DNA of 64,000 bases from Selaginella moellendorffii (lineage: Eukaryota; Plantae; Lycopodiophyta): assembly GCF_000143415.4 (NCBI RefSeq), contig NW_003314277.1, positions 1,140,652 to 1,204,651 on the forward strand. The letters run 5' to 3'. A model generated the notes under the pieces. The model was not told the DNA's origin, ran no database searches, and saw only the letters and a program-made list of their open reading frames with translations. The position numbers and the translations under genes were made by a program. This document shows positions 39,580 through 62,388 of the stretch, piece after piece; the stretch's first letter is position 1; each line of letters begins with the position of its first letter.

Positions 39580-40460
39580 TTTCCTGTACAAGAGCGTTGA
39601 CCACCATTGTCTCCAACTCGAGCTCTTGGTTTGGCAACATGAAATCCCGATGAGCGGCCTTACACTGGCTGAGGCGTGCCAGATTCGCATAGCACCTGGG
39701 CGATTATGATCTTGTCCGGATGATCGATCTTGGAGAAGATCTCCATAGCGTCTTGGATGTGGCCCAGCGTCTTGGATGTTCCAATTGTGTGCTACCAGTT
39801 GCGAGCGGTTGCGAGCATGCATTTGCTATAGCTATTGAGCTTTCTTGACGATCGAGCAGGGGCTTAGATCCGATCCAGTCGTGCTTTTATCTACTCCACA
39901 ACTTATCAGCCTTCCTTTTTGAGCAGCTTCTTCGGCATAGCCCGCTTCATTGATCCTCCCGCGACTCCCAAAGCTTTTCACCTGTGCTGTGGACATAGCG
40001 ACGTCCCAATCGATCCCACGCGCAGGCAAACTTGCAAATTCACTGGGCATAAGCATCGATCATCGCCACCAGATCTTTCTGTAATTTTTTCCAGCCAGTC
40101 AACCTTCCTGCAGCGATCCATACTTCCTCGCAATCTATGTGGCGAAATCCCTGAAAGGCCACTCCTCCAGCGTTACACCAGGCTAACGAACGCTACCTTG
40201 TGTCCGGCTTCATCCACCTCCTCGCTGCAAGGATGGGCCGCAATCTTGAAGCCCCAAGAGAAGACGTTTTTGTCGGCGATGGCATCGAATGCCCCGCGCT
40301 TGTCGTGCGCTTGCCATACATGTCCACCAGAGGATTGCCGATACTGGTGGGCGAGTGGCGGCCATGGAATTGCAGCCGCGCTTGCATGCGTCCCACATTT
40401 CGACACAAGGGCCCCAAACTCCACCGCATCGATCGCAATGTCCGTGCTCCTGGACGCAAG
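39580..40460 (-). pseudogene. Internally deleted duplicate of the adjacent PPR gene
   Basis: Short blocks collinear with 41190-41430, 41565-41590, 42230-42245 and 42400-42925; frameshifted. Confidence 0.85.
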
Positions 40461-40707
40461 GTTTCATCGAATTCTTCCATCGAATGCTGGAGCCGGACGA
40501 CTTGGTCCACTCCACCGCGCTCCAATCATTCGCCATAGTGACAGCTGAGATGTTCTGGACTTCTGGATCGTCTCCTCCAAGCGCTCTTTCAGGATCCACG
40601 AGCAAATCTCTTTGGGCGGATTTGATTGGAATGGTTTGTTGGGGAACTTGCTTCTCCAGATGTATGTAAAAAGGTGTGGACGACTAACGCTCGAGGCCAG
40701 CACGGTT

Positions 40708-42978
40708 TCAAGATACCTGGACCTGACGAATGTTGGAATATTTAACGTACGCCGAGGGAGATTCTAGCGCTCTTCCCACAATCTTGGAGGCCATCTCTCG
40801 GTCTCCTTGCGTGTAGCATCCTCCAAGCAAGCTCTCCACCATCGCGCACGGAAGCAATTCCTCGCTTTTGCGAGAAGAGCTAGACTCCCCAATCTCTTGT
40901 GCGTGCTTGAGCATCCCAGCCCGTCCGAGAAGATCAACCATATGAACCAGATGACTCTGGGACGCCACCAAGCTGTGATCTTGCTCCATGCTGTAGAAAC
41001 AGTACGCTGCATGATCGATCAAGCCCGAGTGGCTGCAAGAGCTCAAGATACTGATGAAAGTCACTTGATTCGGCTCCACTCCTCGCTGCTGCATCCTCTG
41101 GAACAGTTCCATCGACTCGGAGCTCCGGCCGTGCTGGGCGTAAGCCGAGATCATGGCAGTCCACGAGACGATGTTCCTGGACTGCAAACTCATCCTGTCG
41201 AAAACTCTCCTGGCCTCGTCCAGGCTCCCACACTTCGCGTACATGTGTACAAGAGCGTTCGCCACCATTGTCTCCGACTCGAGCTCTTGGTTTGGCGACA
41301 CGAAATCCCGATGAGCGGCCTTGCACTGGCTGAGGCATGCCAGGTCCGCGTAGGCATCCAGCACCTGCGCGATTGTGATCTTGTCCGGATGATCCATCTT
41401 GGAGAAGATCTCCAGAGCGTCTTGGATGTGGCCTGATCTTGCATATCCCATGATCATGGAGCTCCACACCACTGCATCTCGTTTGTCTGTCGGTAGTCCT
41501 TCGAAAGCGCTCCTCGCAAGGCCGAGCCTCTGGGACTTGGAGTACGAGTTGATAAGTGCTGCTACCACGACTGGATCGGATCCAAGCCCCAAACTGGTCG
41601 CTCGATCATGAAGAAAGCTCGTTTGTAGCAATGCATGCTCGCAACTGGTAGCACACGCAGTTAAAACAGTCGCCAACGTGAACGTATCAGCCTTACCACC
41701 TTCCAGATCCATCTTTTTCAGCACGAACAGAGCTTCTTCAGGATGGCTGGTCTCGGCATAAGCCCATACCATGGCATTCCAGAGCACCAAGTCGAATCTA
41801 CAGAGTCGAAATCTCTCAAACACCTCCTCAGCTTCATTGATTCTCGCGTGACTTCCAAAGCATTTCACCAGTGCTGTAGCAACAACTAGATCGTCCCTGG
41901 TCGAAACATCTCCTCCAGTAGAACACAGATACTCCATGGCTCTCGAGCTGATCGTGTTTATCATGCCTGTGCTAAACCCAGACTTCGAAGAGCTCGACAA
42001 TCCCTGAAGGAGAGCAACCAACGTAAAGCTGCTTGCTCGGAAACCTTGCTGTTCCATCTCTCGGAAAACTTGAATTGCTTCCGTGATCTTTTGGTTCTGA
42101 GAGAGGCAGAGGATCATCGCAGTCCACATCCCCACGTCCTTGTTCCCTGAGAAATTCTCAAACACAGCCACTGCTTTCTCTGGATTTCCGCAGCGACCGT
42201 AGCAACGCACCAATGCAGTGGACATGGCAACGTCCCATTCGATCCCATCACTCACTGCACAAGCATGTATCTCTTCTCCATCGCCCAGATCGTCACAGCA
42301 TGAAAGAAGCGTCGTGTAGGTGACTTTGTCCGCTTGCAAAGGCATCCTCTCGTAAATTGCAAATGCCTCTTTGCATTGCCCGCACTGGGCATGAGCATCG
42401 ATCATCGCGTTCCAGGCCACCAGATCTTTCTGTCCAAGACTCTCAAAAACATTTCTAGCCATTCGGCCTTCCTGCAGTGATCCATACATCCTCAAAAGCT
42501 CTGTGGCAATCTGCAAATCCCTGCTAAGCCCACACTCCTCGAGGAGCGATCGAACAAGGTTGCCATGCTCCAGCGTCAAGCAAGACCTCACCAGTCTAAG
42601 GAACACCACCTTGTCCGGTTTCACTCCCTCCAAGCACATCTCCCCAAGAACCTTAAATCTCTCATCCGTGCTAGCATAGGCCGCGATCAAGAAGCCCCAA
42701 GAGAAGACGTTCTTGTCGGCGATGGCATCAAATGCTGTGCGCGCGTCGTGCGCGCTGCCGCATTTGCCATACATGTCCACGAGAAGATTACCGATCCTGG
42801 TAGGCGAATGTCGGCCATGGAATCGCAGCTGCGCGATCAGAGCGTGCAAGCGCTTGCCTGCTTCCAGGGCATTGGATCTGCCACATCTTGACACAAGAGC
42901 CCCAAACTCCTCTGCGTCGATGGCAATGCCCCTCCCCTCTTGCAGCGGAAGAAGCATTTTGGACTTAGAGTTGACCAT
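40708..42978 (-). CDS. PLS-class pentatricopeptide repeat protein (single exon, truncated E region, no DYW)
   Basis: 756 aa ORF from ATG 42978; NLLVDMYGKCGS, NALVHMYAKCGSLDEARRVFD, VSWTAMISAYAQHG, TFISILSSCSHSG, MVDLLGRAG. Confidence 0.92.
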   Translation of the reverse strand: MVNSKSKMLLPLQEGRGIAIDAEEFGALVSRCGRSNALEAGKRLHALIAQLRFHGRHSPTRIGNLLVDMYGKCGSAHDARTAFDAIADKNVFSWGFLIAAYASTDERFKVLGEMCLEGVKPDKVVFLRLVRSCLTLEHGNLVRSLLEECGLSRDLQIATELLRMYGSLQEGRMARNVFESLGQKDLVAWNAMIDAHAQCGQCKEAFAIYERMPLQADKVTYTTLLSCCDDLGDGEEIHACAVSDGIEWDVAMSTALVRCYGRCGNPEKAVAVFENFSGNKDVGMWTAMILCLSQNQKITEAIQVFREMEQQGFRASSFTLVALLQGLSSSSKSGFSTGMINTISSRAMEYLCSTGGDVSTRDDLVVATALVKCFGSHARINEAEEVFERFRLCRFDLVLWNAMVWAYAETSHPEEALFVLKKMDLEGGKADTFTLATVLTACATSCEHALLQTSFLHDRATSLGLGSDPVVVAALINSYSKSQRLGLARSAFEGLPTDKRDAVVWSSMIMGYARSGHIQDALEIFSKMDHPDKITIAQVLDAYADLACLSQCKAAHRDFVSPNQELESETMVANALVHMYAKCGSLDEARRVFDRMSLQSRNIVSWTAMISAYAQHGRSSESMELFQRMQQRGVEPNQVTFISILSSCSHSGLIDHAAYCFYSMEQDHSLVASQSHLVHMVDLLGRAGMLKHAQEIGESSSSRKSEELLPCAMVESLLGGCYTQGDREMASKIVGRALESPSAYVKYSNIRQVQVS

Positions 42979-43189
42979 TTGACTCTTGGAAAAGATCAAA
43001 GGTTTCAATTCTCATAGTGGTGGCAAGCAAAGCAAGCCAGTCGCCCAAGGATCCATAAGTTATCCACGTGGTGTCCCACGTGGCATTTAGTGCGTCTCTC
43101 CAGAGGCTGCTTAATTCGACCATCCACAAAAGTGGTTCCGAATCCTTGTCTACTAAGTGGCTCATCTTTTTATTAAGAATGTTTTTAAG

Positions 43190-44517: not shown

Positions 44518-45256
44518 CTCTTTTTTCAATTTTTTGCAGTTAAGAGCTTTATGAGAAGTTGAGAAGATTTTAAAAGAATATTTGAATATTCTAAAAGAAT
44601 CTGCGCGAAGAGATCCAGTGGAGCACGGCTAAGTAGAGCGAGGGTCACACAGAGGATGTGAGTGAGGTGTCACGTGGAGTAAATCTGGCTTGCAAGCAAT
44701 CAGAGAATACACACTATCTGCCCACATTGTGGACAGAAGTGGCTACACATCTTACTTGATGTATTGGCAGAGTTGCTTATGAACTAATAGCAATTTCTTT
44801 CTCCATTGTAGTTCCAGAAGTGTTGACTTGGGATTTGTGTAGTAGTTGTCATCAAAATGACAACTATTACAAGCACACACAAGTTAATCCTAAATCAACA
44901 CTTCTGAAACTACAATGGAGAAATAAATTGCTCTTGGTTCATAAGAAACTCTGCCAATACATCAGCTAAGAGGCATAGTCATGCCTATCCACAATGCAGT
45001 GCGTATTCTCTGATTGCTCGCAAGCCAAACCTGCTCAGGACACCTCACTCACAGCCACCCCATAACCATGTCTGCTCCTTTGCACATCCTCAAGCTCTGG
45101 CTCTGCACTCCACTCGTGCTCCGTCTCTTCCACTGCCCTAACCAACTTTTTCCCACCTTCCAGATCAGATTCTTTTGGAATATTCGGACATTCTTTTGGA
45201 ATCTTCTCAACTTCTACTTATTTTAAGCTCTTAACTGCAAAAAATTGAACAAAGAG
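44518..45256. repeat. ~740 bp foldback inverted repeat with a 4 nt loop
   Basis: tagtagttgtcat-CAAA-atgacaactatta centre (loop 44853-44856); inner arms ~90% complementary; outer arms ttcaattttttgcagttaagagc / gctcttaactgcaaaaaattgaa. Confidence 0.9.
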
Positions 45257-45815: not shown

Positions 45816-46115
45816 TCACATCCTAATGCAGCGGCTTCCACCACCACTCCAGCTCAAACCAGGAGGGCAGCGATGGCAGCCATTTCTATACCAGTACCAG
45901 CTGCTTGGGCAACTCACGCATTTGCTTCCACTCCACTTCCATCCGGAGAGGCATTGGTGGCAACCGTTGCCATACCAGTACCAGTCTTTCGGGCACTGGA
46001 TACACTTCTCACCATCCCAGTTCCATCCGGATTTGCATCGCTGCTGGGCGTCCACTCCCACTAGGAGGAGTGTCACAAACATCGCCAAGAGTATCAGCTG
46101 GGACTTGCTTGCCAT
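45816..46115 (-). CDS. Small secreted Cys/Trp-rich repeat protein, copy A (5 repeats)
   Basis: Intact 99 aa ORF; signal peptide MASKSQLILLAMFVTLLLVGVDA; 14-aa CxxxWxWxxxxCxx repeats; TATA ~100 bp upstream; two paralogues in the window. Confidence 0.88.
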   Translation of the reverse strand: MASKSQLILLAMFVTLLLVGVDAQQRCKSGWNWDGEKCIQCPKDWYWYGNGCHQCLSGWKWSGSKCVSCPSSWYWYRNGCHRCPPGLSWSGGGSRCIRM

Positions 46116-47822
46116 GATGATTGATCTCAGAATTGTGATATCAGATTATAAACTATGATCTAGATCTCTCCAACTTCTTTAGCTTCTTAAAGATCAGGGT
46201 GTGGTTTGGGGAATTTATAGCACCGAGATGTTGGAAGGGACGAAGTCTAAATAATCGTCTTCACTCGGCTTTGACTTCTTACCACGTACACTTTGTTGCT
46301 CTTGATATAGTCAAGAACTAGTACGTGTGTAAACGGCCTGTGGAATCTTCAGACGCCATGCAGGTTGGAAGCTGCTGTTGGAAACTTTCTTACTATATTA
46401 TAATAAGGATATGAAGTTGGAATGGTCAAATAGTTCCAAGAACTGTGATATTGGGCCTCTAACTCCCCTCCATGCTCCACCATCTCTTACGCATGTTTAT
46501 AATCATCCACACAAAGATTCTACCAGCCAGCTCGCCAAAGAAGGTGGCGAGCTTTTTCTTGCACATAGATTTTGCTAGGCTGTTCTAAGTTGAAGACTTC
46601 ATCAAGACCTCTCAATGGGATCACTATGTTCCTATATTTGATTGCAAACAAGAAGATGGCGAGCCTCTTCTATTGGCTATTTTTATTGGGTGTCAATGCC
46701 TGATTGCAAGCCAATTTTTTTTTCACCAAGTTTGAGATTCTTGTGTTATAATGATGCCCACCATCTTAGACTTTTCATTTTTTTTCATGTTTTGCCACAT
46801 TCCCCTCATTTTAGATTCCTTTAGGTTCTGATCTCTTACTACAATCTCCTAGATAGATAATCTAAAAATATTTTTGAAGCTGACTATATAATGTTCATTT
46901 GATAAAATATAATAAAATTAAAATAAAAAAGTTTATCTTGAGTATTTTATCCTTTTCTATTTTTATTAATTTGTCATTTTGTAATTTAGATATATTGTAT
47001 ACATAACACTTAATTTTCTTGTAAACTTAAAATTTTATTATGAAATTTTCTTAATTTTTTATATTTTGTTACTCCTGATAATTATACTTTAGAGTATAGA
47101 GGAAAAAACACACTTATACAAAATGAAATTGTAATTATTATAATTCAGCTTTCACAAAAACTTAGAAATATACTATCTAGTAAAACTCCAAGAGATCAAT
47201 AAGCAGTTGTAATGGAGTATGAAAATAATAATATAAAACAAAAAAATTATTACATTAACATTATTTAATATTAATATTAATTATTTTATCCTTAATCAAG
47301 AAATTATGAAGATAGAGATAATATAAGAATTACTCTTAATAATGTTTTAAATCGAACTAGAAGAAAAATTAGAATATTAAGTGCTTTTTACAGTAGTAAT
47401 TGGCTTATAGAGTTTTGAATATATGGCATTTAATTATAATTTTACTTTCCATATAAATGAGGTATGACAAAATGCTGAGAAATGCTACTTTGGATGAAAT
47501 CAAGAGGCAGCTAAACTTACCCGGATTTTTTATGTAATCCGCTCCTAATTACAAACCATGCCTTTCTTAAAAATTACTTGTCATAGTGCTGTGTCCATCC
47601 GGATTTGGAGCGGATTCAATTCCCATAAGTGGATAAGTGGGACACTTTTTGTTGCACTTGGACATGGATAATCTCAAAACAAAAGCATACATATCATTAG
47701 GAAATGAGAAACTTCAAACGCCATGCAAGTTGGAAGCTGCGGTTAGATCTTGCTTATATTATGAAGTTGGAATTTAGACATGTTTAGCTTGTTAGTGAAA
47801 ATTGTTAGTGAAAATTATAAGT

Positions 47823-49033
47823 TTAGACTTCCAAGAACAGCCATTCTTCCCCATCCACAAACGCAATACTGCTGTAGTCCTGAGCCTCTTCTTCGCTCAA
47901 GTGTTTCACCCAATTGGCAAGCTTCGTGGGGACAGCCCCTGGACCCTGACTATCGTACTCAGCAAACAAAACGTTCCTGGAAATCACACAAAAAAACGAT
48001 TACATGCCTACTTCGAGCCAATATCTAGATTCATACCCATTGCCATTGTTGTATGGCCATCTGTCCCAGTTGTTTGGAGTTACAACTTCGTCAAAATAGC
48101 TACTGATAAGCACAACGCGGGCAAAATCTTTCCAAGGGTGGCCGAAAGACAGTTGCCCAGTTCCTCCAAAGTAGCTGTTGACGAACGAGTAACCCCATGA
48201 TCCCTCTGGCTTAGACTGAAGAGTAATCCCTCCAGTGTTGTTCCTCGAGTTGGAGACGATATTACACTCCTGTGCACTCAAAGAATTGATCATATAAGCG
48301 TCACGGACGAAACAATTCTTCTTCAGTTTCATATTTACCTGGAATAATGACCTTCCTTGTCCAGTGATGAAGTTTATACTGCCTTGGATGAAGGTCCTCT
48401 TGTAAAAATGCCTGCCGCGGTCTTCAGAGAGCGTATGCTGGCTCGAAGTGATGAAACAGTCGTAAAACGCCGCAAAGTCACCCGATACTTGCACGGCTAC
48501 GGTGTTGCTTTGTTGTTCTCCTACGGCTCCAGCATAAACAAATGGCGCATCGTTCTAAACTTCATATTAATAAAAGTTGAAGAGACAAGAACTTGGAAGT
48601 ACCTTGAATGTGATGAACTGCGCAACAAAGTATTTTGCCTGAACTGAGAGTGTGGGCTCGTTTCCAGCGGACACAACAATCGTCGCAAACTTGTCATCAA
48701 AGTCGCCCAAGAGCGTGATGAAATCCTTGCTTGCTGGAATCGTGACTCTCTCGCTGCAAGAGAACACAAGCATTAATGATAGTAATGCTATAGTGATTAC
48801 CGATAAACTCCGCTGGCGACATGGATTATGTAGCGCCGCTTGTTCTCCAGTGGAACAGCATCGATGGCGGCCTGGATCGTCTTGAAATCGCTGCTCGGCC
48901 CAACATAAACGTCGATCTTTCTCTCATTCGCATTGACAAGAGCGGGGTGAAGATCATCTTCAGCATGACCTTTGCATAGATTATGCTGAGACAAAAGAAC
49001 CAATAAGCCCAACAGGAAAATCACCCTCAACAT
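47823..49033 (-). CDS. Pectinesterase (PME, CE8) homologue, 5 exons, catalytic residues substituted
   Basis: Signal peptide; DFKTIQAAIDAVP, GVYRE, AEYDSQGPGA and FVDGEEWL; intact GT-AG structure; QHTL, NFITG and GHPW in place of QDTL, DFIFG and GRPW. Confidence 0.9.
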
Positions 49034-49392
49034 TGCAACGATCTCCAAGATTAAAAATGGGAGGAAACTTCCTCTTTAAACGCTCTTGGGAGAGTTGAAT
49101 ATGGTTTATGCGCATGTTAATTTTATTAATAAAAACGCAAAAATAAATCTAATAATAAAAATAATTAATTTTGGATTGCGTTAATGTACGGTTGGTGGCG
49201 TCCGTACGGCCTTGGCCCCATGGCATGATGAAAAAACCCTAAAGTGCGAGGTATGATTTTGTGTGGACTGGAAGAGTCCTACTCGAATTCCTTTGTCTCT
49301 CTTCTACGGCGGGGAGGCCATTCTTGTCGGCGCGGGCGATCGATCGATCTATTCTTCTTCTTTCCTCGATCGGGCGATCGATCGTTCGGGCT

Positions 49393-51122
49393 ATGGGGGC
49401 ATTGCCGATCGCGGAGTTTGTGAGCAGCGCCAGCAGCGCCAGCGATTCCGATAGGTCAGCAGCCAGCGACGAGGATTGTCTCGTGGACGACGGCGACGGC
49501 GATCTGGTAGCCGATTCGCGGCTGGTGAGCTCGGTGCGCGCGCTGCTCCAGGGGCTGGGCGAGGATCTCTCGCGCAATGGACTGATCAAGACGCCGTCCA
49601 GGGTCGCCAATGCCTTCCTCTCTGCCACTAAAGGTTAGCATTTCTCTTCCAAGGCGAGATATCGATCGCGTAGCGCTTGCATCACAGTCCCTTCCTTTCT
49701 TTCTCTTGAGTGATTGGTTCTTTGCGTCGGTCTTCTCGTGCTAGATGACAAAGCTTTTCTTTTTTAAATCTCGCGAGCCGAGACTTTCGTATAGAACTCT
49801 TTTTTCCATGTCGGATGGAGTTCTAAGTTTTCAAGCTTAGAAATCTTCTTTCTTTCTAGAGCTTGGAGAGAGTTCTAAGCTCTGTTGGACAGGCTTCTAC
49901 GTTTCAAGCTTTCTTCTAAACTTCTTCTCTTACTTGGACCATAGGCTATGGACTCTCGGCGGAGCAAACCATCGGTGGAGCTCTCTTTGCAGAAGCGGGC
50001 CCTGGAAACGGCAAAGGTGGCGGCTGCGGAGGAATGGTGGTGGTCCGAAACATCGAGCTCTTCTCCACCTGCGAGTCCTGCCTCTTACCATTCAAGCTCT
50101 GCTGTCACATCGCTTACATTCCCTCCGAGCAGCGCGTCGTCGGCCTCAGCAAGCTCCCCCGCGTCGCGGAGATCTTCGCAGCTCGGCTCCAAAGCCCGGA
50201 TCGTCTCGCCAACGAGATCGGCGGAGCTCTCTGGGACGGATTCAAGCCTCTCGGGGTGGCCGTGGTTGGAGAGACTTGGCATCTCGAGTGTCCCCGAGAG
50301 CTTCGAAGCAGCAGGGAGCCGGCTTCCTGGATTCGACGATCGGTCTGCGCCAGGAAAGGCAGCTTCGAGGACGACGATCGTGGCTCGGAAGACTGGCAAG
50401 AGTTCGTTGCCATGCTCCAGCTGAGTGGAAGTTCGCAGCTCTCGGTGACGAAGAAGCCGGCGATCTGTCCACTACTAGCCGGTGACGCCGCCGCTGAGAG
50501 ATCCTCCTCTTCGCACCCCAACTTTGAGACGATGGTCGAGGCGGTGGTGACGCTGCTGCGAGCTCTTGGCGAAGATCCAACGCGGGAGGAGCTCAAGCTC
50601 ACGCCCTCTCGCTACGTTCGCTGGCTGCTAGCATCGACGCACGGGAGCCGGCTCTCTAGAGACTTGATACTAGGGAATGGAGTAGCAGCAGTAGAACAGG
50701 ATGGCGATCACCACGCGACGATGGTAGCTGTGCTGGATCTTCCATTCTGTTCCCAGTGCGAGCACCACCTTCTTCCATTCTCTGGGGTGGCTCACGTCGG
50801 AGTTCTTCCAGCGAAAAACCACCCGAGCTCTCATCCCAGAGCTAGTCGGGCCATCCTCGAGAAGATTGTCAAGCTGTACAGCTGCCGGCTCCAAGTCCAG
50901 GAGAGATTGACGAGGCAAATCGCCGACGCTGTGATGAGCTCCACTGCTGCTAGCGGCGTCATGGTCGTCGTCGAGGCTGGGCACGTCTGTATGATCTCTC
51001 GAGGAGTGAAGAAAACCGGCAGCACTACAGGAACGCTGGCGACAATGGGCGATTTTGCCGTCCATGGCAAGAAGAGAGCGGAGTTCTTACAGATGATCGC
51101 TACTGCAAACTCTTCCAAGTAA
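49393..51122 (+). CDS. GCH1: GTP cyclohydrolase I, plant two-domain type (exons 49393-49633, 49945-51122)
   Basis: GLGEDLSRNGLIKTPSRVA; FSTCESCLLPF; LGEDPTREELKLTP; CEHHLLPF; VQERLT; HVCMISRGV. Confidence 0.95.
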
Positions 51123-51274
51123 AGAGGGAGAGACAGAGATCTGCGAGTAAAGAGTTGAATTTACCGAGCAAAGGAATTTTTTTAACGAAGAACAGACTTA
51201 CGTACTTCTTAGGACGTCTTTACACTTACAAAATTACGATGCCACTGCCGCTGGAGCTCGCCAGGAACTCTTCT

Positions 51275-52562
51275 TCACGCAGTGGTCAAGTATCTCTTCA
51301 CGGCGGCCTTTTGCTCTGGAGTGAGTCGCGTGGGAAACTTGACGTCGAATTTGATCTTGAGGTCTCCTTTCCTGCCTGGCTCCTTGGCGATCGGCATGCC
51401 TTCCCGTGGAACAATCTTCTCGTAGCCGGGAGAGATGATGTCGTTGATGGGAATCGTGAGCGTTCTTCCGTCGAGAGTGTTCACTGTGATCGTCGTTCCT
51501 GTTAGAGCGTCGGCCAGGGACACCTTCTGTGTCATCACCAAGTCGTTGCCGTCGCGCTTGAAAACGTCGTGTGGCTTCTCGTCGATCACGAAGACGATGT
51601 CCGCCGGTATCAAGTTTGGCTGCTCGTTTCCCTTCTCTGGAAAAGTGATCTTGGTGCCTTTCTTCCACCCCGGCTTCACGTCGATAGTAAGAAACTCCTC
51701 CACAGGCATTGTCTTCCTGTAAAGAAACAAGAAGCTCTCACGTTAGAATCCTCCATAAGAGCGTTCTAGGCAAAGTTCTAACGAAGTTCTAGCAAAGTTC
51801 TAGCGAAGTTCTAGCAAGGTTCTAGCAAGGTTTAGCAAAGTTCTAAGGAAGTTCTAGCGAAGTTCTAGCAAGGTTCTAACTTTCCAAAGAAACTTACCCG
51901 CTGGGATCGGCGATGTTGCGAGAGATCTTCATCTTCCTGGTGGAGCCAGTGTAGAGCTCCTCGAGACTGCACGGGAGCTTGTTCTCCACCGCCGGAGCCT
52001 TCCTCGGACCGGTCGACAGAGATCCACCATCCTGGCCGAAGGATCTGAAAACGTTCTCGGTTCCACCAAAGCCCCCAAACATTCCATCGCCAAAGGGCGA
52101 CCGGCTAGCGCTCCTCCCAAAACCTCCCATCCCAAACGGGCTGGATCCACCGAAGAACTCGGCAAAGATGTCCTCGGCGTTCCTAGGATTGAACACGAAC
52201 ACGTTGGGTCCCGCGCCATTCGCGAAATTCGTCCCTCCCGTGGCGCCGGGAGGAGGAACTTGGCCCTTGAGACCCTCCTCGCCATACTGGTCATAGATCG
52301 TCCTCTTTTGGGGATCGCTCAGCACCTGCGAATCACAGAAATCGATCGATCAGCCACAGCCGATCGAGAAGAGAGAAAAAAGAGGGATCGATCATACCTC
52401 ATACGCTTCCGAGATTTGCTTGAATTTGGCCTCGGCCTCCTTCTTGTTGTTGGGATTCTTATCGGGATGCCACTTCATGGCGAGCTTGCGGTAGGCCTTC
52501 TTGAGATCATCCTCGGTGGCATTCTTGTCCACCTTGAGCACGCTGTAGTAATCTATCCCCAT
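51275..52562 (-). CDS. Type II DnaJ/Hsp40 (DNAJB4-like), 3 exons
   Basis: J-domain with WHPDKNP; G/F-rich linker; CSLEELYTG; [13 protein letters not shown]; [13 protein letters not shown]. Confidence 0.95.
51763..51880. repeat. Intronic minisatellite of ~12-13 bp AAGTTCTAGC units
   Basis: About nine degenerate copies within DnaJ intron 2. Confidence 0.85.
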
Positions 52563-52700
52563 CGATTCCTCGCTAGCAAGGATTTTCCCCCTTTCTCGAT
52601 CCTAGAAGCTCGAATCTCGCTACACTACTCTCGCGAATCCGGAAATTTCACAGCGCAGTCGATCGACCGATCGGCTCAAAACCCTGATAGCTTTAGCTCC

Positions 52701-52776
52701 AGAATCTTCTGGAAAATACCATGACGTGGAACTTAGGCCCAAATATAAGCCGCCACGTCAGCCGGGATGCCACGTC
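52701..52776. promoter_or_regulatory. Heat-shock element plus three TGACGTGG/CCACGTC bZIP motifs in the divergent DnaJ/RibBA promoter
   Basis: aGAAtcTTCtgGAAa at 52701-52715 (perfect 3-unit HSE); TGACGTGG 52722-52729; GCCACGTCA 52752-52760; GCCACGTC 52769-52776. Confidence 0.7.
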
Positions 52777-52869
52777 TAAAACCCGTGTAAGGTTTAAACT
52801 CTAATTCTGCGTGCTCTACTTTAGGGCTCTTTGTTCTATCCAGAAATATTTCTGGGAAGAAAGGGCGCG

Positions 52870-54758
52870 ATGAGGATGATGCGCTTGGATGGAAATCCCG
52901 TCGCGATCCAGCTCAATCTCAATGGCGGCGGCGTGTCAGTGCGAATGGTTGCGAGATCGCCGCGAAGGATCGGCTACGCTGCCGCCGTGCGCATCAGGCG
53001 AGGAGCATTCGCTGTGCGATGCGAGAAGGGGAATGGCGCGGTGAATTCGTCGTCCGGCAGTGGATCTGCCGAGGTAGGCGGCGTGAGGATGGATTTCGAT
53101 CCTGTAGAGGAGGAATTCGAGAGCAGCGAGATCGAGGGGGATCCCGATCGTCCGTCCGAGGGATTTAGCTCCGTCGCCGAGGCGCTGGAGGCTTTCAAGC
53201 AAGGCAAGGTAAGGTATGGGTGCTTGCTAGAAAAAAATTTCCTTCCTTCCTCCTTTCTTGTTTTTTTCTTCTTGTGCGTCTTAAAGAACTCCTCATGTAG
53301 ATGGTCATTGTTGTGGACGACGAGGATCGAGAGAACGAGGGTGACTTGATAATGGCGGCTTCCATGGTGACTCCCGAGAAGGTCGAGTTCCTGCGAAGCC
53401 ATTGCACTGGGATCATTTGCGTCCCCATGAAGGGTGAAATTCTGGACCGATTGGACGTAAAGTTGATGGTTTCGGACAAAGAGAACGAGGAAGCACTATC
53501 TACAGCGTTTACGATTCCTGTGGTTAGTAGTTTTTTTTGTTCTTCACTTTTGGCTCGAATTCTTAGTTTTAAACTCTTTGTGCTACAGGATGGCCAAGGG
53601 ACAACCACGGGTGTGTCATCCGAGGACCGTGCGAGAACCATTTCAATGCTTGCGTCGCCAAATGCCACTGCGAGCGATTTTAAGAAACCGGGACACGTTT
53701 ATCCTCTACGTTATAGAGAAGGTGGAGTTTTGAAGCGAGCAGGACACACGGAAGCCGCGGTTGATCTCGCTGTGCTTTCTGGAATGCCACCCGTTGGAGT
53801 GATCTGTGAGCTGGTGAACGAGAAGGATGGAAGCATGCAACGTTTGCCACAGCTACAAGTGTTTGCGGAAAAGCATAACTTACACATCATCTCCATTGCC
53901 GACATGGTCAGGTACTGGAAGCTCATTGTTGTTTTTCGTATGTTTCGTTCTGAGACGCAGGCTGTGCTCGTAGGTACCGGAGAAAACGCGAGAAGTTGGT
54001 CGAGCGAACAGCCATTTCGAGGCTTCCAACAAGGTGGGGGCTTTTCAAAGCGTACAGCTACAAATCCAAGCTCGATGGCATCGAACACATTGCCATTGTG
54101 AAGGTAAAAAACACTCTTTTCCATACACTCGACTTAAAAAATCTTCCAGGGTGACATTGGCAACGGCCGGGATGTCCTCGTCCGTGTCCACTCGGAGTGC
54201 CTCACCGGGGACGTTTTCGGTTCCAAGCGATGCGACTGTGGCAACCAGCTCGAGATCGCGATGATGCAAATCGAGAAAGCCGGGAGGGGAGTGCTGGTTT
54301 ACTTGCGTGGTCACGAAGGACGAGGAATCGGCCTGGGACACAAGCTACGGGCATATAACTTACAGGACGAGGGCCGTGACACTGTGGAAGCAAACGTAGA
54401 GCTCGGCCTTCCAGTCGATTCGCGGGAGTATGGAATTGGAGCACAGGTAATGGATCAAACACTCGAAAACCTTGCGACTGATCGAACTTTCGTTTTGTAG
54501 ATTCTAAGGGACGTGGGTGTTAGAACGATGAAGCTCATGACCAACAATCCAGCAAAGTATATGGGATTGAAAGGCTATGGTTTGGCGATCACTGGCCGCG
54601 TTTCGGTGATCTCCACTATCACTGACGAGAACAAGCGCTACTTGGAAACCAAGCGCGAGAAAATGGGCCATGTCTATGGGTCGGAGTTACCGGGGACTTT
54701 TACTGGGCTCATTGCTGACAAGGTAAATGGGAAAAAAAAGAGCCAAAATTCTCTTTAA
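52870..54758 (+). CDS. RIBA1: Bifunctional DHBP synthase / GTP cyclohydrolase II (plastid riboflavin biosynthesis), 6 exons
   Basis: Transit-like N-terminus; [22 protein letters not shown]; [37 protein letters not shown]. Confidence 0.95.
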
Positions 54759-54854
54759 CAATACGTCGAGTGTTCGAATCCCGTCAATGGCAATTTTTTC
54801 TAAAACCCCATCAAATTCTTTCTTTCTTGTCCAAGCCCTAAAATGTGCCTTGCA

Positions 54855-56319
54855 ATGGCGAGAGGAGCTCCGCTATGGCGCGCGGCGACGGCGATTTGTA
54901 GGGGCCGATCGGTGCGTGGATTGCCTAGAATCACTGCAATCGGTGCGAAATCTTTCTCTGTCGATGCTTCCTCGCGCACCGATCTCATCAAGACGCTGCG
55001 CGAGCGGACCGGGGCGCCGATCAAGGATGTCAAGGAGGTGCTGGTGAAATGTGAATGGAACGAAGGTATGCTCTTGATGAGATTGTGGAGAATTATTTTT
55101 TCTTTGGATTTTTCTATAGAGAATGCGTTTACTGAGCTGAGGAAGAAGGGCCTTGCTGCCGCGACGAAGAAATCTTCTCGTGTGGCTGCGGAAGGATTGC
55201 TTGGACTGGCACACTTCGAGAAAGGTGCCGCGGTCATAGAGATTAACAGCGAGACTGACTTTGTTGCTCGAAACGATCTCTTCCAGAGCCTTGTAAGTGA
55301 TGGATGATCTTTTAGTTTTGCTCACGATTTTTCCAGGTGCTGTCAGTCGCAAAAGCGGCATCCACATTGAAAGCTGTCCAACAATTTTCTTCTAAACCAG
55401 CTGCTCTTGATTTGCACGATTTAGAGGTAAGTCTGTTCTCTCGAAGGAAAGATCTTTCATGTTTGGAAATTTCCAGCTTGTAAATGTGAAGCTGGATCAC
55501 GCATCAATCACCAGAGAGCTTCGTGTACGCGACGCAGTCTCGGAAGTTGCCGCTATCACTGGAGAAAATGTGAGACTTCGAAGAGCTTTCTATATGTCTT
55601 CGCAAAGAGGGATCGTGTCCTCGTATTTGCACATGAGTCCGGCATCAGGTACTTGTAAATTCCACTGTTTGCTCGTTTCTCACAGATTTATTCTGAAAGG
55701 TTTATCTCGGCTCGCGGGGCTCGTTTCGGTCGAGGTTGAAGATGATCAAGAAGGCTCGCATTCGGAAACACTGAAAAGCGTGGGCTCGTCTCTTGCAATG
55801 CATGTTGTTGCTGCAAGGCCGCTGTTTTTGTCTAAGGAACTCGTGGACTCTGAAGTACTGGAGCATGAGCGGAACATCTGCAAAGCACAGGTGCAAGGCA
55901 TTTGTTTTTCTGTGCCTTTATTGATTGTCTATTGTTTTTTTGTTTTGTTGTTGCAGGCCTCGACTGCTGGAAAGCAAGAGAATGTCGTCCAGAAGATGGT
56001 CGAAGGCAGGCTTGCCAAATACATGGAAGAGGTTGTTCTTCTGGAGCAGAAGTACGTTGCAGACGAAACGAAACGGATCAAAGTAAGTCACATCCTTCGA
56101 ATGTGTCTCATCAGCCTCTCTTTCAGGTCCTGCTAAAAGAGGCGTCCAAGGAAATCGGGAAGACGGCCAAGATCGAGGGATTCCTGCGAATAGAAGTCGG
56201 GGAGGGGATCGAAAAGTAAGTCCTTGTTACAATCCAAGCCTTCACGAACCAATTCCTGGCTTCACTTTCCCAGGCTTGAAAAGGACTTTGCTGCCGAGGT
56301 TGCTGCTGCAGCACGATGA
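54855..56319 (+). CDS. tsf: Mitochondrial elongation factor Ts, 8 exons
   Basis: Arg-rich presequence; LIKTLRERTGAPIKDVK; [12 protein letters not shown] signature; KMVEGRL; EVGEGIE; alternative ATG at 54843. Confidence 0.93.
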
Positions 56320-56458
56320 CAGGTTGGATATTCAAAACAAGTAGGTGGTTTTATTCGAATCAAATCAATTGCCAAAGACGCTGGCACATTATCTCGAGGA
56401 CAAGACGCAATGAAATAACGAATTGGAAGGTACTTCTTTCTCGCTGGAGTTAACTGAC

Positions 56459-56860
56459 TTAGTTCTTGGTGCAGTGAGCCTTGCTCCATTTCCAGCCATA
56501 CGGACAGCGGTGGCAATCGTTGTTATACCAATACCAGTCACTCGGGCAGCTCACACACTTGCTTCCACTCCACTTCCATCCGGACGGGCATTGGTGGCAC
56601 TTGTTGTTGTACCAGTACCAGTTGCTCGGGCAGCTCACGCATTTGCTTCCACTCCACTTCCAACCGGAGAGGCATCTGTGGCAATCGTTGCTATACCAGT
56701 ACCAGCCCTTGGGACACTGGATGCACTTGTGGCCGTCCCAGTTCCATCCAGATTTGCATTTCTGCTGGGCTGCTGCGCTTGCGATGCCACCAACGTCCAC
56801 TCCAACCAGGAGGACTGTCACAACCATGGCCAGAAGCATCAGCTGGGACTTGCTCGCCAT
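56459..56860 (-). CDS. Small secreted Cys/Trp-rich repeat protein, copy B (7 repeats)
   Basis: Intact 133 aa ORF; signal peptide; seven 14-aa repeats with 14 Cys and 14 Trp; TATA at ~56959-56965; GA-repeat 5' UTR. Confidence 0.9.
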   Translation of the reverse strand: MASKSQLMLLAMVVTVLLVGVDVGGIASAAAQQKCKSGWNWDGHKCIQCPKGWYWYSNDCHRCLSGWKWSGSKCVSCPSNWYWYNNKCHQCPSGWKWSGSKCVSCPSDWYWYNNDCHRCPYGWKWSKAHCTKN

Positions 56861-57323
56861 CTTGGTAGAAGAAACTTTCGAAGTGTACTGAGATCTCTCT
56901 CTCTCTCTCTCTCTCTCGCAAAACTTGCTGCTGTGTGGTGGATTAGAAGTGGAGGCAATTTATAGGATGGAGGAAGTGGAGACCAAGTCCAGCGAGATTG
57001 CTACAGCGTCACTCGGTTCTGACTATTTAGCCAGCATGTTATGCTTGACATAGTCGTTAGACGTAATCTATCCAATTATCACAGAAATGGTATAAATTCG
57101 ACGGCAGCCAGAACACGAGACATTGATTTCTATGTGCCAAACCATGAAATAGTCATTTTGAAAGGATCAACTTTCCTCTTTAATAAGAAAAAGCGAAAAC
57201 ATGAAATTTAGCTCCCACCACCTTTTCTTGAGAAGCATATGATTATTAAACCAGAAAATGAAACTTTATTCAACTTTCTTGTGACTAGAACCGAATAGAA
57301 GTTAGCAAAATGCAGAAACGATC

Positions 57324-58472
57324 TATGCTTTCTGACTAAACAAGAAATCCGCATATGCATCACTGAATTTCTGCATTGTCCGCTCTCTCTCGTACAATTT
57401 AGTCATGCAGACACAATGTGTTAACTGCTTGATGCTTTCCAAAAACTCCTCATTCTGATATAGAGTAACCACACAAGGCTAGAAACCAGGAAGAAATCGA
57501 GTATCAAATCTTGTCCAACTCAATAAAGTCTCCAGATTTGATGCATTCAGTTTATCGAACTTTATCTCTCTCCTTTTAAGCCAATTGAAAAAGGGACAAT
57601 AGTTTGATGAGAAAGCCTATTTTATCCCCATTTAACTCCCTCCCAAGGTTCCAAGGATTCACGGTAACAGTATATCCAAATCTCATCTCATGATCACATG
57701 TGCTACACTCACCCCCCCCTTCAGAGATGTCAATGTCCTCATTGATTGTTAATTAACAACCCCTACTGAGCCAAGGGGAACTAACACTTCCATTTCTACA
57801 CTAAATCTACCAATCCCTCTATTGTGTAGACTAACTATTCCATGTGAGGCAATTAATCATCCATCTGTACTGTAATCCCACTGTGGATACCTTCGTCTAG
57901 GATGCTCCACAAAAGGAAGGACATACGCATAGATGCCTAATACGTATGATTTTCAAATTTAGGAGTAAAAATATACATTGCTCAAAGGTATATTATATTT
58001 TAGATAGCCACTAATCAATGGGAATCGAACCTGTGCCATTTGCTCTGATACCAACTATAGCAAGATCATAGGTCACCACCACCTTAAAAATTCCAGGCAA
58101 ACAGACTTTGTCAATCACATCTTTTGTGACAATAACCACCGCTCTCTTGTCTTTGACCCTCTTTTTCTCCAAAGTGCTCAATTCCTCCACTATAGTTATT
58201 GTTGCCATTGTCACTCTCTTGGCATCCAAAACCTGTTTGATTTCATATGCGGTATCCTTGCCATTACAAAAGACTAGCATTGGGGCTCCTTTAAAAGGGT
58301 GTTGCAGCATACATTTCACGGCACTTGCAAACCTGGTAGCTCTTGATTCCCTATCCACTGGGATCGCACACATGCGAAACTTGATAAGCTTTTGATTGCA
58401 GTCAGTGAAATAATCAGATGGACTGCCCAAAGCACCCATGCCACTAAATCCTTCCTTCTTAAAAACCTCCAT
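57324..58472 (-). pseudogene. Disrupted copy of the helicase-C-like gene
   Basis: Matches 60928-61566 but has a TRIM insertion and a TGG>TAG stop, and its upstream region is cut by the duplication junction. Confidence 0.85.
57557..58064 (-). mobile_element. Circularly permuted single-LTR TRIM of the same family as 14581-15187
   Basis: Starts inside the LTR (actttatctctc), then LTR end TGTGCTACA, PPT (ctcaccccccc), internal region, PBS gctctgatacca, then only the remaining LTR bases tatagca; absent from the sister unit. Confidence 0.85.
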
Positions 58473-58720
58473 CCTGGTAGGGTTTCTAACTTATTTGAAA
58501 GAAGCAGAATTAGGCCTAATAAGAATCAAAGGTTCCAGAAGCTTATGGATAAATAAACATAAACCGTTTCTTTTCAAAAAATAAAGGTGACAAAAAAAGT
58601 ATCATTTCGAAACAATTGACGAAGCTTTCTTTCCTTTTTCTTCTGCGGATTTCTACGATGTGGAGATAATGCTAATGTTAAAGGAAGGAAGAATTGTTTT
58701 TTCTTTGGATTTTTCTATAG

Positions 58721-59930
58721 AGGATGCGTTTACTGAGCTGAGGAAGAAGGGCCTTGCTGCCGCGACGAAGAAATCTTCTCGTGTGGCTGCGGAAGGATTG
58801 CTTGGACTGGCACACTTCGAGAAAGGTGCCGCGGTCATAGAGATTAACAGCGAGACTGACTTTGTTGCTCGAAACGATCTCTTCCAGAGCCTTGTAAGTG
58901 ATGGATGATCTTTTAGTTTTGCTCACGATTTTTCCAGGTGCTGTCAGTCGCAAAAGCGGCATCCACATTGAAAGCCGTCCAACAATTTTCTTCTAAACCA
59001 GCTGCTCTTGATTTGCACGATTTAGAGGTAAGTCTGTTCTCTCGAAGGAAAGATCTTTCATGTTTGGAAATTTGCAGCTTGTAAATGTGAAGCTGGATCA
59101 CGCATCAATCACCAGAGAGCTTTGTGTACGCGACGCAGTCTCGGAAGTTGCCGCTATCACTGGAGAAAATGTGAGACTTCGAAGAGCTTTCTATATGTCT
59201 TCGCAAAGAGGGATCGTGTCCTCGTATTTGCACATGAGTCCGGCATCAGGTACTTGTAAATTCCACTGTTTGCTCGTTTCTCACAGATTTATTCTGAAAG
59301 GTTTATCTCGGCTCGCGGGGCTCGTTTCGGTCGAGGTTGAAGATGATCAAGAAGGCTCGCATTCGGAAACACTGAAAAGCTTGGGCTCGTCTCTTGCAAT
59401 GCATGTTGTTGCTGCAAGGCCGCTGTTTTTGTCTAAGGAACTCGTGGACTCTGAAGTACTGGAGCATGAGCGGAACATCTGCAAAGCACAGGTGCAAGGC
59501 ATTTGTTTTTCTCTGCCTTTTATTGATTGTCTATTGTTTTTTTGTTTTGTTGTTGCAGGCCTCGACTGCTGGAAAGCCAGAGAACGTCGTTCAGAAGATG
59601 GTCGAAGGCAGGCTTGCCAAATACATGGAAGAGGTTGTTCTTCTGGAGCAGAAGTACGTTGCAGACGAAACGAAACGGATCAAAGTAAGTCACATCATTC
59701 GAATGTGTCTCATCAGCCTCAGGATTTGATCTTTCAGGTCCTGCTAAAAGAGACGGCCAAAGAAATCGGGAAGACGGCCAAGATCGAGGGATTCCTGCGA
59801 ATAGAAGTCGGGGAGGGGATCGAAAAGTAAGTCCTTGTTACAATCCAAGCCTTCACGAACCAATTCCTGGCTTCACTTTCCCAGGCTTGAAAAGGACTTT
59901 GCTGCCGAGGTTGCTGCTGCAGCACGATGA
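58721..59930 (+). pseudogene. 5'-truncated duplicate of EF-Ts (exons 2-8, frame intact)
   Basis: Duplication starts inside intron 1, so the presequence exon is missing. Confidence 0.85.
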
Positions 59931-60069
59931 CAGGTTCGATATTCAAAACAAGTAGGTGGTTTTATTCGAATCAAATCAATTGCCAAAGACGCTGGCACAT
60001 TATCTCGAGGACAAGATGCAATGAAATAACGAATTGGAAGGTACTTCTTTCTCGCTGGAGTTAACTGAC

Positions 60070-60471
60070 TTAGTTCTTGGTGCAGTGAGCCTTGCTCCAT
60101 TTCCAGCCATACGGACAGCGGTGGCAATCGTTGTTATACCAATACCAGTCACTCGGGCAGCTCACACACTTGCTTCCACTCCACTTCCATCCGGACGGGC
60201 ATTGGTGGCACTTGTTGTTGTACCAGTACCAGTTGCTCGGGCAGCTCACGCATTTGCTTCCACTCCACTTCCAACCGGAGAGGCATCTGTGGCAATCGTT
60301 GCTATACCAGTACCAGCCTTTGGGACACTGGATGCACTTGTGGCCGTCCCAGTTCCATCCAGACTTGCATTTCTGCTGGGCTGCTGCGCTTGCGATGCCA
60401 CCAACGTCCACTCCAACCAGGAGGACTGTCACAAACATGGCCAGAAGCATCAGCTGGGACTTGCTCGCCAT
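60070..60471 (-). CDS. Small secreted Cys/Trp-rich repeat protein, copy C (7 repeats)
   Basis: Mature sequence identical to copy B; one V>F change in the signal peptide and two synonymous Lys codon changes. Confidence 0.9.
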   Translation of the reverse strand: MASKSQLMLLAMFVTVLLVGVDVGGIASAAAQQKCKSGWNWDGHKCIQCPKGWYWYSNDCHRCLSGWKWSGSKCVSCPSNWYWYNNKCHQCPSGWKWSGSKCVSCPSDWYWYNNDCHRCPYGWKWSKAHCTKN

Positions 60472-60504
60472 CTTGGTAGAAGAAACTTTCGAAGTGTACT
60501 GAGA

Positions 60505-60547
<43 letters not shown>

Positions 60548-60927
60548 ACTTGCTGCTGTGTGGTGGATTGGAATTTATAGGATGGAGGAAGTGGAGACCA
60601 AGTCCAGCGAGATTGCTACAGCGTCACTCGGTTCTGACTATTTAGCCAGCATGTTATGCTTGACATGGTCGTTAGACGCAGTCTATCCAATTATCACAGA
60701 AATGGTATAAATTCGACGGCAGCCAGAACACGAGGCATTGATTTCGTGCCAAACCATGAAACTGTCATTTTGATGGGTTCAAATTTCCTCAAGAAAATGC
60801 GAAAACATAAAATTTAGTTCCCACCACCTTTTCTTGAGAAGCATATGATTACTAAACCAGAAAATGAAACTTATTCAACTTTCTTGTGACTAGAACCGAA
60901 TAGAAGTTAGCAAAATGCAGAAACGAC

Positions 60928-61566
60928 CTATGCTTTCGGACTAAACAAGAAATCCGCATATGCATCACTGAATTTCTGCATTGTCCGCTCTCTCTCGTAC
61001 AATTTAGTCATGCAGACACAATGTGCTAACTGCTTGATGCTTTCCAAAAACTCCTCGTTCTGATATAGAGTAACCACACAAGGCCAGAAACCAGGAAGAA
61101 ATCGAGTATCAAATCTTGTCCAACTCAATAAAGTCTCCAGATTTGATGCGCTCAGTTTATCATAGGTCACCACCACCTTAAAAATTCCAGGCAAACAGAC
61201 CTTGTCAATCACATCTTTTGTGACAATAACCACCGCTCTCTTGTCTTTGACCCTCTTTTTCTCCAAAGTGCTCAATTCCTCCACTAAAGTTACTGTTGCC
61301 ATTGTCACTCTCTTGGCATCCAAAACCTGTTTGATTTCATATGCGGTATCCTTGTCGTTACAAAAGACTAGCATTGGGGCTCCTTTAAAAGGGTGTTGTA
61401 GCATACATTTCACGGCACTTGCAAACCTGGTAGCTCTTGATTCCCTATCCACTGGGATCGCACACATGCGAAACTTGATAAGCTTTTGATTGCAGTCAGT
61501 GAAATAATCAGATGGACTGCCCAAAGCACCCATGCCGCTAAATCCTTCCTTCTTAAAAACCTCCAT
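60928..61566 (-). CDS. Protein with a degenerate DEAD-box helicase C-terminal (RecA2)-like domain; may have an upstream exon
   Basis: MLVFCNDKDTAYEIKQVL (motif IV-like), VIVTKDVIDK (motif V-like), VVVTYD; AG acceptor just before the ATG. Confidence 0.6.
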   Translation of the reverse strand: MEVFKKEGFSGMGALGSPSDYFTDCNQKLIKFRMCAIPVDRESRATRFASAVKCMLQHPFKGAPMLVFCNDKDTAYEIKQVLDAKRVTMATVTLVEELSTLEKKRVKDKRAVVIVTKDVIDKVCLPGIFKVVVTYDKLSASNLETLLSWTRFDTRFLPGFWPCVVTLYQNEEFLESIKQLAHCVCMTKLYERERTMQKFSDAYADFLFSPKA

Positions 61567-62388
61567 CCTGGTAGGGTTTCTAACTTATTTGAAAGAAGCA
61601 GAATTAGGCCTAATAAGAATCAAAGGTTCCAGAAGCTTATGGATAAATAAACATAAACCGTTTCTTTTCAAAAAATAAAGGTGACAAAAAAAGTATCATT
61701 TCGAAACAATTGACGAAGCTTTCTTTCCTTTTTCTTCTGCGGATTTCTACGATGTGGAGATAATGGACTTCGACCGCTGCAGCCGTTACAGCCCGGACGA
61801 AGACGATGCTTGGGTGTTGGCGAGGCTTTCCAAAAGCTTTCGGCTGGCCACTACTTCCGGAAGTTTGAGGTTTTCGAGCAAGAGTTTGCTGGCATTGCAA
61901 GGCTCTACAGGCCCAGCTGGAGATGTTTTCAGGGATTGAAGAAGGGAGTGATGCAGATGAAGACAGTGACTTGTCGTTTGAGTTTGTTTGTTTTCATTTG
62001 ATTTCTTTAGTAGTGTATTCAACTTCTCTGTTTGTTGTTTCTTTATTTCAATGGAAACTTGGTATAGCGCGAGAGTTAAAATGGATAAACAAATTGGTCC
62101 CTTGAAAGTTTGCATCCGGGAAGTCTGATCGTGATTCATTTGACGCTTTGATTCATCCAGCAGGGTTTTGCTTCAAGTTTTCAAGAACAAACTAAAACAC
62201 GAGAAGGGGACTCATGAAACAAGAATCATGATCTTAACGAGACAAAGGAAAAATTGATTGCCAATGCATGTAACAAACAAAAAGTTGTACCCGGAACAAA
62301 AATACGTCTGTTGTCTTCTTGCTAGGTGCTGCTCCTATTATTTCATCGGAAAAATCAAAAATTAGTGTTGAGACCACCCTTGCTAAGC

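Follow-up and report, generated by a model that had tools for sequence, protein, structure and literature searches.

Three genes for predicted secreted Cys/Trp hairpin-repeat proteins, members of an apparently lineage-specific family, in the lycophyte Selaginella moellendorffii

The window analysed here is a 64,000-nucleotide stretch of the Selaginella moellendorffii genome (contig NW_003314277.1, positions 1,140,652 to 1,204,651, forward strand), and coordinates refer to it unless stated otherwise. It contains three short genes, designated A, B and C, for small proteins made up of a leader followed by a tandem array of 14-amino-acid, cysteine- and tryptophan-rich units that are predicted to form hairpins. 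The three repeat open reading frames (ORFs) had been noticed in a sequence-only reading of the window; they are present where that reading placed them and lie on the minus strand, which it had omitted. The genes are:

46115-45816, minus strand: gene A, intronless coding sequence, 99 amino acids, 10 Cys; leader of about 23 amino acids, QQ and 5 putative hairpin units
56860-56459, minus strand: gene B, intronless coding sequence, 133 amino acids, 14 Cys; leader of up to 31 amino acids, QQ and 7 putative hairpin units
60471-60070, minus strand: gene C, 133 amino acids, 14 Cys, 7 units; tandem copy of B

The cysteine spacing of all three proteins is strictly 10, 2, 10, 2 and so on, the sole exception being the last unit of A (x12). 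The 14-residue C-x10-C-x2 units alternate between an odd type, G-W-(K/N)-W-(S/D)-G, and an even type, W-Y-W-Y-x-N, with slight deviations in the terminal units (L instead of W5 in A5, K instead of G9 in B7). This alternation and the 84-bp higher-order period described earlier are borne out by the unit sequences and by Tandem Repeats Finder, which detected the 84-bp repeat (2.6 copies, 82%) in both B and C. The window holds 18 occurrences of the motif of a single unit, while none was seen in any of 30 shuffles, and a hidden Markov model (HMM) of the repeats found no additional or decayed copy in the window besides A, B and C. According to the unit-to-unit DNA identities, a block of two units was duplicated to give the additional pair of B and C. 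A had been said to differ from B and C by exactly one 28-residue block; the extra two-unit block is there, but an 8-residue leader insertion and the longer last unit of A also separate them. Three intact reading frames are likewise present, but B and C, which differ by three nucleotides and one amino acid, located in the leader, are near-identical copies from a recent tandem duplication and not independent members of a three-copy family.

The mature proteins are small and basic (A: 8.9 kDa, pI 9.0, net charge about +7; B: 12.3 kDa, pI 9.0, about +10). Trp and Tyr together make up 17-21% of mature A and B, in which no N-glycosylation site was found. Hydropathy peaks at 3.0-3.2 in the leaders and does not exceed 0.16 across the mature parts, and neither a second hydrophobic segment nor a retention signal was found in the A, B and C proteins. 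By the -3/-1 rule A has a single good predicted cleavage site, directly before QQ, while B and C have seven candidate sites; the suggested N-terminal pyroglutamate is plausible for A and uncertain for B and C. With a predicted secretion signal, a small Cys-rich mature part and an even number of cysteines (10 and 14), the proteins fall within the broad definition of plant cysteine-rich peptides (CRPs), and their cationic, aromatic-rich composition is that of antimicrobial peptides.

A, B and C are real, conserved coding genes under purifying selection. Over the first four units of A and B, dS is 1.08 and dN 0.10, giving a dN/dS of about 0.09 (Fisher p 7e-7). Units 3-4 and units 5-6 of B differ with a dS of 1.25 and a dN of 0.08, and the extra 28-residue block is therefore an old duplication that has been retained under selection. 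The window is 100% identical to S. moellendorffii scaffold GL377581.1 across 15,542 bp, and GL377566.1 represents the other haplotype, about 98% identical. A and the B-type genes are intact in both haplotypes, the mature region of A being identical in the other one, and among the five B-type copies across the two haplotypes 5 of the 7 variable sites are silent. The view that these are real genes is thus upheld by the selection, by the intact frames in both haplotypes and by conserved promoter blocks (see below).

Existing gene models cover the family poorly. B is a called but unnamed gene in GCA_000143415.2, C is uncalled, and A is absorbed in the mis-spliced model SELMODRAFT_403507 (P0154, L002 10001-12028), though its frame is intact. 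A further paralog forms the first 53 residues of RefSeq XP_024531936.1 (P0004), annotated 'pectinesterase', which looks like a chimeric gene model. Both XP_024531936.1 and SELMODRAFT_403507 appear to be chimeras that open with the family leader and first units and are then spliced off at an apparent false GT donor, one of them into pectinesterase.

A recent tandem duplication, 3.6 kb in length and including the 3' part of the neighbouring gene for mitochondrial EF-Ts, gave rise to B and C:

54843-56319, plus strand: mitochondrial EF-Ts gene, converging on B; context, outside the family
55089-58689: duplication unit 1, with the 3' part of EF-Ts (plus strand), gene B (minus strand) and a further minus-strand ORF
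58690-61765: duplication unit 2, with a 5'-truncated EF-Ts copy and gene C

The duplication arms are 96.6% identical for 55089-57556 and 58690-61161 and 98.8% identical for 58065-58671 and 61159-61765. The stop codons of EF-Ts and B are 139 bp apart (56319-56459). B-type copies number two in the window haplotype and three in the other, where one is C-like. Because the divergence between the B and C units is close to that between haplotypes, an assembly artefact that had placed the two haplotypes in tandem was also weighed; it was ruled out, and the duplication taken as real, because the other haplotype also carries tandem copies, including a C-type one. In that haplotype (L003 13100-17340 / L005) extra truncated EF-Ts copies are found, with a decayed pentatricopeptide repeat (PPR) block and an EF-hand gene call between the units. 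The further minus-strand ORF is itself duplicated (58011-58472 and 60928-61566); by eye it resembles the C-terminal half of a helicase, related DNA lies 43 kb off at 14636-15189, and no exact database product was found for it.

The following promoter and 3' elements were identified:

46213-46219, minus strand: TATA box of A, 104 nt ahead of the ATG
56958-56964, minus strand: TATA box of B, 104 nt ahead of the ATG
60573-60579, minus strand: TATA box of C
46227-46312, minus strand: upstream block of A shared with B and C; TGAC-core motifs, two W-boxes in A
56966-57055, minus strand: upstream block of B conserved with A
56350-56355, minus strand: AATAAA, which may serve B as poly(A) signal; a separate contig of run X9 ends 12 nt past it, which is no more than suggestive, as contigs cannot show RNA ends

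Local alignment of the upstream blocks of A and B gave a score of 40 against a shuffle mean of 17.7, with none of 2000 shuffles as high. A has three W-boxes within 320 bp where about 0.3 would be expected.

The B region is present in 20 public runs from at least seven studies. Four runs were examined in detail for B, using contigs that carry no strand information. The contigs of these runs skip seven GT-AG introns of EF-Ts and the runs are therefore RNA assemblies. Contigs of X1, X4 and X9 cover B without mismatch and can thus be assigned to B rather than C. In X1 and X4 spliced EF-Ts and B share a single contig, which extends past the TATA box of B, and antisense read-through from EF-Ts into B is therefore probable. 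The convergence of the two genes and the joint contigs suggest a sense-antisense overlap. X9 has a separate contig (56338-56885), from 12 nt past the AATAAA to the 5' GA repeat of B, which suggests a transcript of B's own. Contigs of diverged paralogs also occur in X4 and X10; the substitutions of the one in X4 are compatible with the XP_024531936.1 paralog, and it continues into repeats, not into pectinesterase. Transcription of the copies, asked for in the sequence-only reading, is accordingly seen for B in spliced RNA assemblies, whose contigs do not tell the strand.

AlphaFold2 (AF2) predicts one beta-hairpin per unit, seven in both models of B, with strand 1 at W5-W7 and strand 2 around Cys12. 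The pLDDT, a predicted score of the local distance difference test, was 78 without an alignment and exceeded 90 for most of the repeats when a 9-row alignment was supplied; the predicted template modelling scores (pTM) were 0.38 and 0.56. The units are predicted to stack as a short rod, probably of the growth-factor-receptor/TNFR-like type. A Cys1-Cys12 disulfide probably closes each hairpin, a pairing that is drawn from the spacing and from sequence relatives and would use all 10 or 14 cysteines. The earlier suggestion of a disulfide-stapled hairpin in every repeat thus agrees with the models and with the same C-x10-C in solved proteins, while its disulfide part is suggested by the spacing.

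The AlphaFold and Foldseek comparison that had been proposed gives a hairpin ladder, with structural matches that are all below significance. Among the Foldseek matches of the first model, Mst1 of Chlamydomonas ranked first (probability 0.93, E 0.04), and the top ranks of the structure searches were uniform, comprising Mst1, meckelin, the TNFR family, R-spondin, thyroglobulin, ELAPOR1 and the Cys-rich domain of class C G-protein-coupled receptors. Searched by features, the ESM Atlas gave no usable match for B and a best value of 0.83 for A, with template modelling (TM) scores below 0.45. Scores against Pfam stayed below the curated cut-offs (PF23091 26.3 against 33.2 bits, PF07699 16 against 23.1, PF15913 13.2 against 28; DUF5874, PF19202, 11-13 against 27.1). 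Every TNFR-like cut-off was missed, so that A, B and C would be ladder-like without belonging to a named family. Sequence matches were found to thyroglobulin, with the identical C-x2-C-x10-C-x2-C period (E 0.006), and to LOX-1, in which a C-P-x-D-W-x-W-x-G-x-x-C stretch is nearly identical to unit A2 (E 0.002); this stretch is a disulfide-closed hairpin.

A search of 1.84 billion representative sequences gave 304 proteins at E up to 0.001, of which only the Selaginella chimera XP_024531936.1 is a close relative, the rest matching at the level of the motif. The distant matches sampled are long or membrane-anchored unnamed proteins, mostly metagenomic, with repeats of the C-P-x-G-x-x-W-N-G-x-x-C type. 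W5 and W7 occur together in just 1 of the 787 same-spacing units of the distant matches, and the aromatic excess is therefore family-specific. On the sequences compared, the spacing appears widespread, whereas the W-x-W/WYWY decoration, the two-unit alternation and the stand-alone secreted format appear specific to the A/B/C family. No plant homolog outside S. moellendorffii was found in the searched collections, which miss unannotated small genes. A word-based search gave no match for B and only the mis-spliced SELMODRAFT_403507 for A; NCBIfam and PHROGs gave no match for the family. No description of the A/B/C family was found in the literature covered, which leaves out most subscription papers.

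No close relative was found in metagenome contigs, bacterial and archaeal genome contigs or viral contigs. A search of fungal and bacterial proteomes had been proposed as a check for horizontal transfer; the matches obtained are motif-level and lend no support to transfer, P0002, at 37% identity, being too motif-driven. This protein (L001 5001-7187) is a bacterial protein of 728 amino acids encoded behind prepilin-like genes, with many Tyr-rich 14-residue C-x10-C-x2 units at its C-terminus. It is the closest spacing analogue found and has a faint match to Pfam PF27023 (6BHPP), a family for which no paper was found in the literature search. The Trp-rich, Cys-free bacterial repeats P0032, P0044 and P0052 were set aside as compositional matches.

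The unit has its clearest counterparts in growth-factor-receptor/TNFR-like repeats (the thyroglobulin type-2 region, Ephrin_rec_like PF07699, TNFR_ELAPOR1_6th PF23091, Furin-like_2 PF15913, Mst1 and meckelin), which share a C-x-x-C-P-x-G start with A, B and C and form a ladder of short hairpins; thyroglobulin also shares the 14-residue period. The units of A, B and C are shorter and uniform and carry W5 and W7, where the known ones have mostly Y/F6, and they make up the whole secreted protein, whereas the known repeats form a stalk in large proteins. DUF5874 and unnamed microbial, viral and protist surface repeats (e.g. P0001, P0002, P0005, P0019 and P0020) share C-x10-C-x2-C, G4, W7 and G9 with A, B and C, with phmmer E-values down to 1e-30 at 35-50% identity. 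Unlike A, B and C, they are found in long or membrane-anchored proteins and lack the strict alternation of two units. This likeness lies at the level of the motif and shows neither descent nor transfer.

Long-form C-type lectin-like domains (LOX-1, CLEC12A, NKG2D) have an N-terminal hairpin with one C-P-x-x-W-x-W-x-x-x-x-C stretch as in unit A2. In those domains the hairpin is a single accessory element and not the ligand site, and A, B and C are without a lectin domain; about 30 residues around one hairpin align, compared with a globular domain of about 120 amino acids. Unit A5 begins C-P-x-G-L-x-W, which resembles the C-terminal hairpin of CBM14/peritrophin-A (tachycitin, Avr4), and CBM_14 clusters were weak Atlas neighbours (0.83 and 0.76). 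CBM14 is however a six-Cys beta-sandwich, while the A/B/C model is a hairpin ladder without a beta-sandwich core. Avr4 contacts chitin via residues spread over the whole domain (PMC6128652), and a lone CBM14-like hairpin is thus no sign of chitin binding.

Plant CRPs resemble A, B and C in having a leader, a small, cationic and Cys-rich mature part, tandem genes and poor annotation, but they have fixed numbers of cysteines and compact cross-linked folds, and none has the pattern (C-x10-C-x2)n. None of the Cys patterns of knottin, thionin, defensin, hevein, snakin, lybatide, beta-ginkgotide, jasmintide, potentide and RALF (PMC11253845) fits 10, 2, 10, 2, and Pfam gave no match to a plant CRP family at E up to 10. 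The placement of this spacing outside the standard plant CRP classes therefore stands. The further claim of an undescribed family stands in part: no description from plants was found in the literature covered, but the unit resembles a known Cys hairpin (thyroglobulin, Mst1, meckelin, ELAPOR1 and microbial surface proteins). Judged by these comparisons, A, B and C appear to be a lineage-specific secreted CRP family built on a known hairpin module.

The reading proposed here, with a probability of roughly 0.45, is that the products are intact, cationic, aromatic rods that are secreted and bind microbial surfaces in defence. A, B and C would be long members, with five and seven units, of a Selaginella-specific secreted Cys-rich family. 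Each 14-residue unit would form a two-stranded beta-hairpin held by its Cys1-Cys12 disulfide, the units would pile into a short rod and the protein would be secreted uncut to the apoplast or the plant surface, where its net positive charge would attract it to anionic surfaces. W-x-W would lie on one face of the rod and Y-x-Y on the opposite face of every second unit, and the repeated Trp and Tyr would provide multivalent contact with microbial glycan chains or membrane interfaces. The protein could then act in defence by agglutination or growth inhibition, with the number of units tuning avidity.

Copy-number variation is common for defence genes, and the difference between the haplotypes (two against three B-type copies) was counted for this reading; together with the W-boxes of A it favours defence weakly. 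Cationic plant CRPs are often antimicrobial (PMC11253845), and an antimicrobial or lectin activity of A, B and C can at present only be inferred. The wider proposal is more doubtful, namely that free-standing, disulfide-closed Trp/Tyr hairpin ladders form a lycophyte-specific defence class, a new modular antimicrobial or lectin fold on a scaffold undescribed in plants, in which the avidity towards microbial glycans or membranes would depend on the number of units.

Several results weigh against a role in defence. Pfam gave no match of A, B or C to CBM14 (PF01607), hevein or lectin families, and no structural match was significant (E no better than 0.04 in Foldseek, Z no higher than 4.0 in VIA, pTM 0.38-0.56). 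Some of the repeat aromatics are probably structural. No canonical W-box was found upstream of B and C, the neighbouring genes are of the housekeeping kind, and because EF-Ts was carried along, the duplication of B may have been passive. Selection is strongly purifying and shows no sign of being diversifying, a pattern that agrees equally well with a fixed ligand or a structural role.

With a structural or adhesive role, the proteins would belong to the wall, cuticle, spore coat or mucilage of the plant itself, the rod binding pectin or phenolic polymers or associating side by side with itself like the Mst1 rod. Mst1 heads the Foldseek matches of the first model, and its Cys-rich domain makes antiparallel dimers and filaments (PMC11015965); the purifying selection, the same-spacing repeats known from large microbial surface proteins, and B-matching contigs in runs of at least four studies, consistent with constitutive expression, point the same way. 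The products are however just 9-12 kDa and lack Pro-rich, glycosylated and anchoring segments as well as an N-glycosylation site, and this role is regarded as rather unlikely. As a protein ligand, the rod would be secreted either to signal to a receptor of the plant or to inhibit an enzyme of a microbe or herbivore, and would be used as in TNFR, R-spondin and furin-like Cys domains. The solved fold relatives are mostly protein binders (TNFR, RSPO2, HVEM, Eph) and numerous plant CRPs are signals or inhibitors (PMC11253845), but near-identical alternating units in variable number are better suited to a repetitive ligand than to one receptor pocket, and the A, B and C genes have no linked receptor or hydrolase partner, which makes such a ligand improbable.

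The sequence-only reading had also allowed for a multi-core precursor, cut into single disulfide hairpin peptides of 12-14 amino acids like the Impatiens antimicrobial peptides or alpha-hairpinins. Each unit could close its own disulfide, the Gln at the mature start could cyclise, and multi-core CRP precursors are known (PMC11253845). The idea has been weakened and is now very unlikely, because the units abut via two-residue CxxC joins, without an acidic spacer, Asn/Asp site, dibasic site or (by Pfam) BURP domain; the CxxC linkers are conserved per unit type and AF2 gives a continuous ladder. The CxxC spacing, a His beside Cys12 in even units and one weak match to the Nup153 zinc finger (E 0.055) could instead speak for metal ligands, of a zinc-ribbon or metallothionein-like kind, in place of disulfides. 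The leader however indicates a secretory route that is oxidising, a CxxC partner is missing for the first and last Cys, while no Cys is left over in Cys1-Cys12 pairing, and the matches are chiefly extracellular disulfide proteins, so that metal binding is given hardly any credence. Still less credible is a locus that makes no protein, with the RNA over B merely the antisense 3' tail of EF-Ts. The strandless joint contigs of X1 and X4 would allow it, but the dN/dS of about 0.09, the conserved promoter blocks and TATA boxes, the B-only contig of X9 ending just past AATAAA and the paralog contigs in X4 and X10 all argue against it.

The other neighbours in the window are pectinesterase, GTP cyclohydrolase I, DnaJ, RibA, PPR and P450 genes, and nothing suggests a functional gene cluster. 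The genes for GTP cyclohydrolase I (folate; 49261-51122) and RibA-type DHBP synthase/GTP cyclohydrolase II (riboflavin; 52831-54758) are adjacent, with the DnaJ gene alone between them, in an order conserved in both haplotypes; the DnaJ gene has an 11-bp tandem repeat of 10.5 copies between two exons (51763-51878). About 560 bp downstream of A lies a long imperfect inverted repeat (44518-45256) resembling a miniature inverted-repeat transposable element (MITE), with ends 86% identical over 91 bp and an internal palindrome of 78%. A Ty3/gypsy-type retrotransposon (19943-24329) contains gag, protease, reverse transcriptase and integrase-like ORFs in several frames and an assembly gap. Also found were a cytochrome P450 gene, accompanied by a second, partial copy (34555-36166 and 37757-38074), and a PPR gene with decayed adjacent copies (39364-43008).

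The locus contributes a selection test, a difference in copy number between haplotypes, the converging arrangement with EF-Ts and the finding that B is already annotated as an unnamed gene. As the units are small, regular and open to synthesis, function can be tested directly, and a ladder of disulfide/Trp hairpins whose length can be adjusted could serve as a useful scaffold. If the function is structural, the family would still be a new type of wall or surface protein, of narrower interest. Lycophyte defence peptides are scarcely catalogued and few Cys patterns define the plant CRP classes; a further class would be added by a conserved family that has a new Cys pattern and is for the most part wrongly annotated, and this family would show an early-diverging vascular plant making secreted effectors from a repeat that surface proteins of animals, algae and microbes otherwise use as a stalk.

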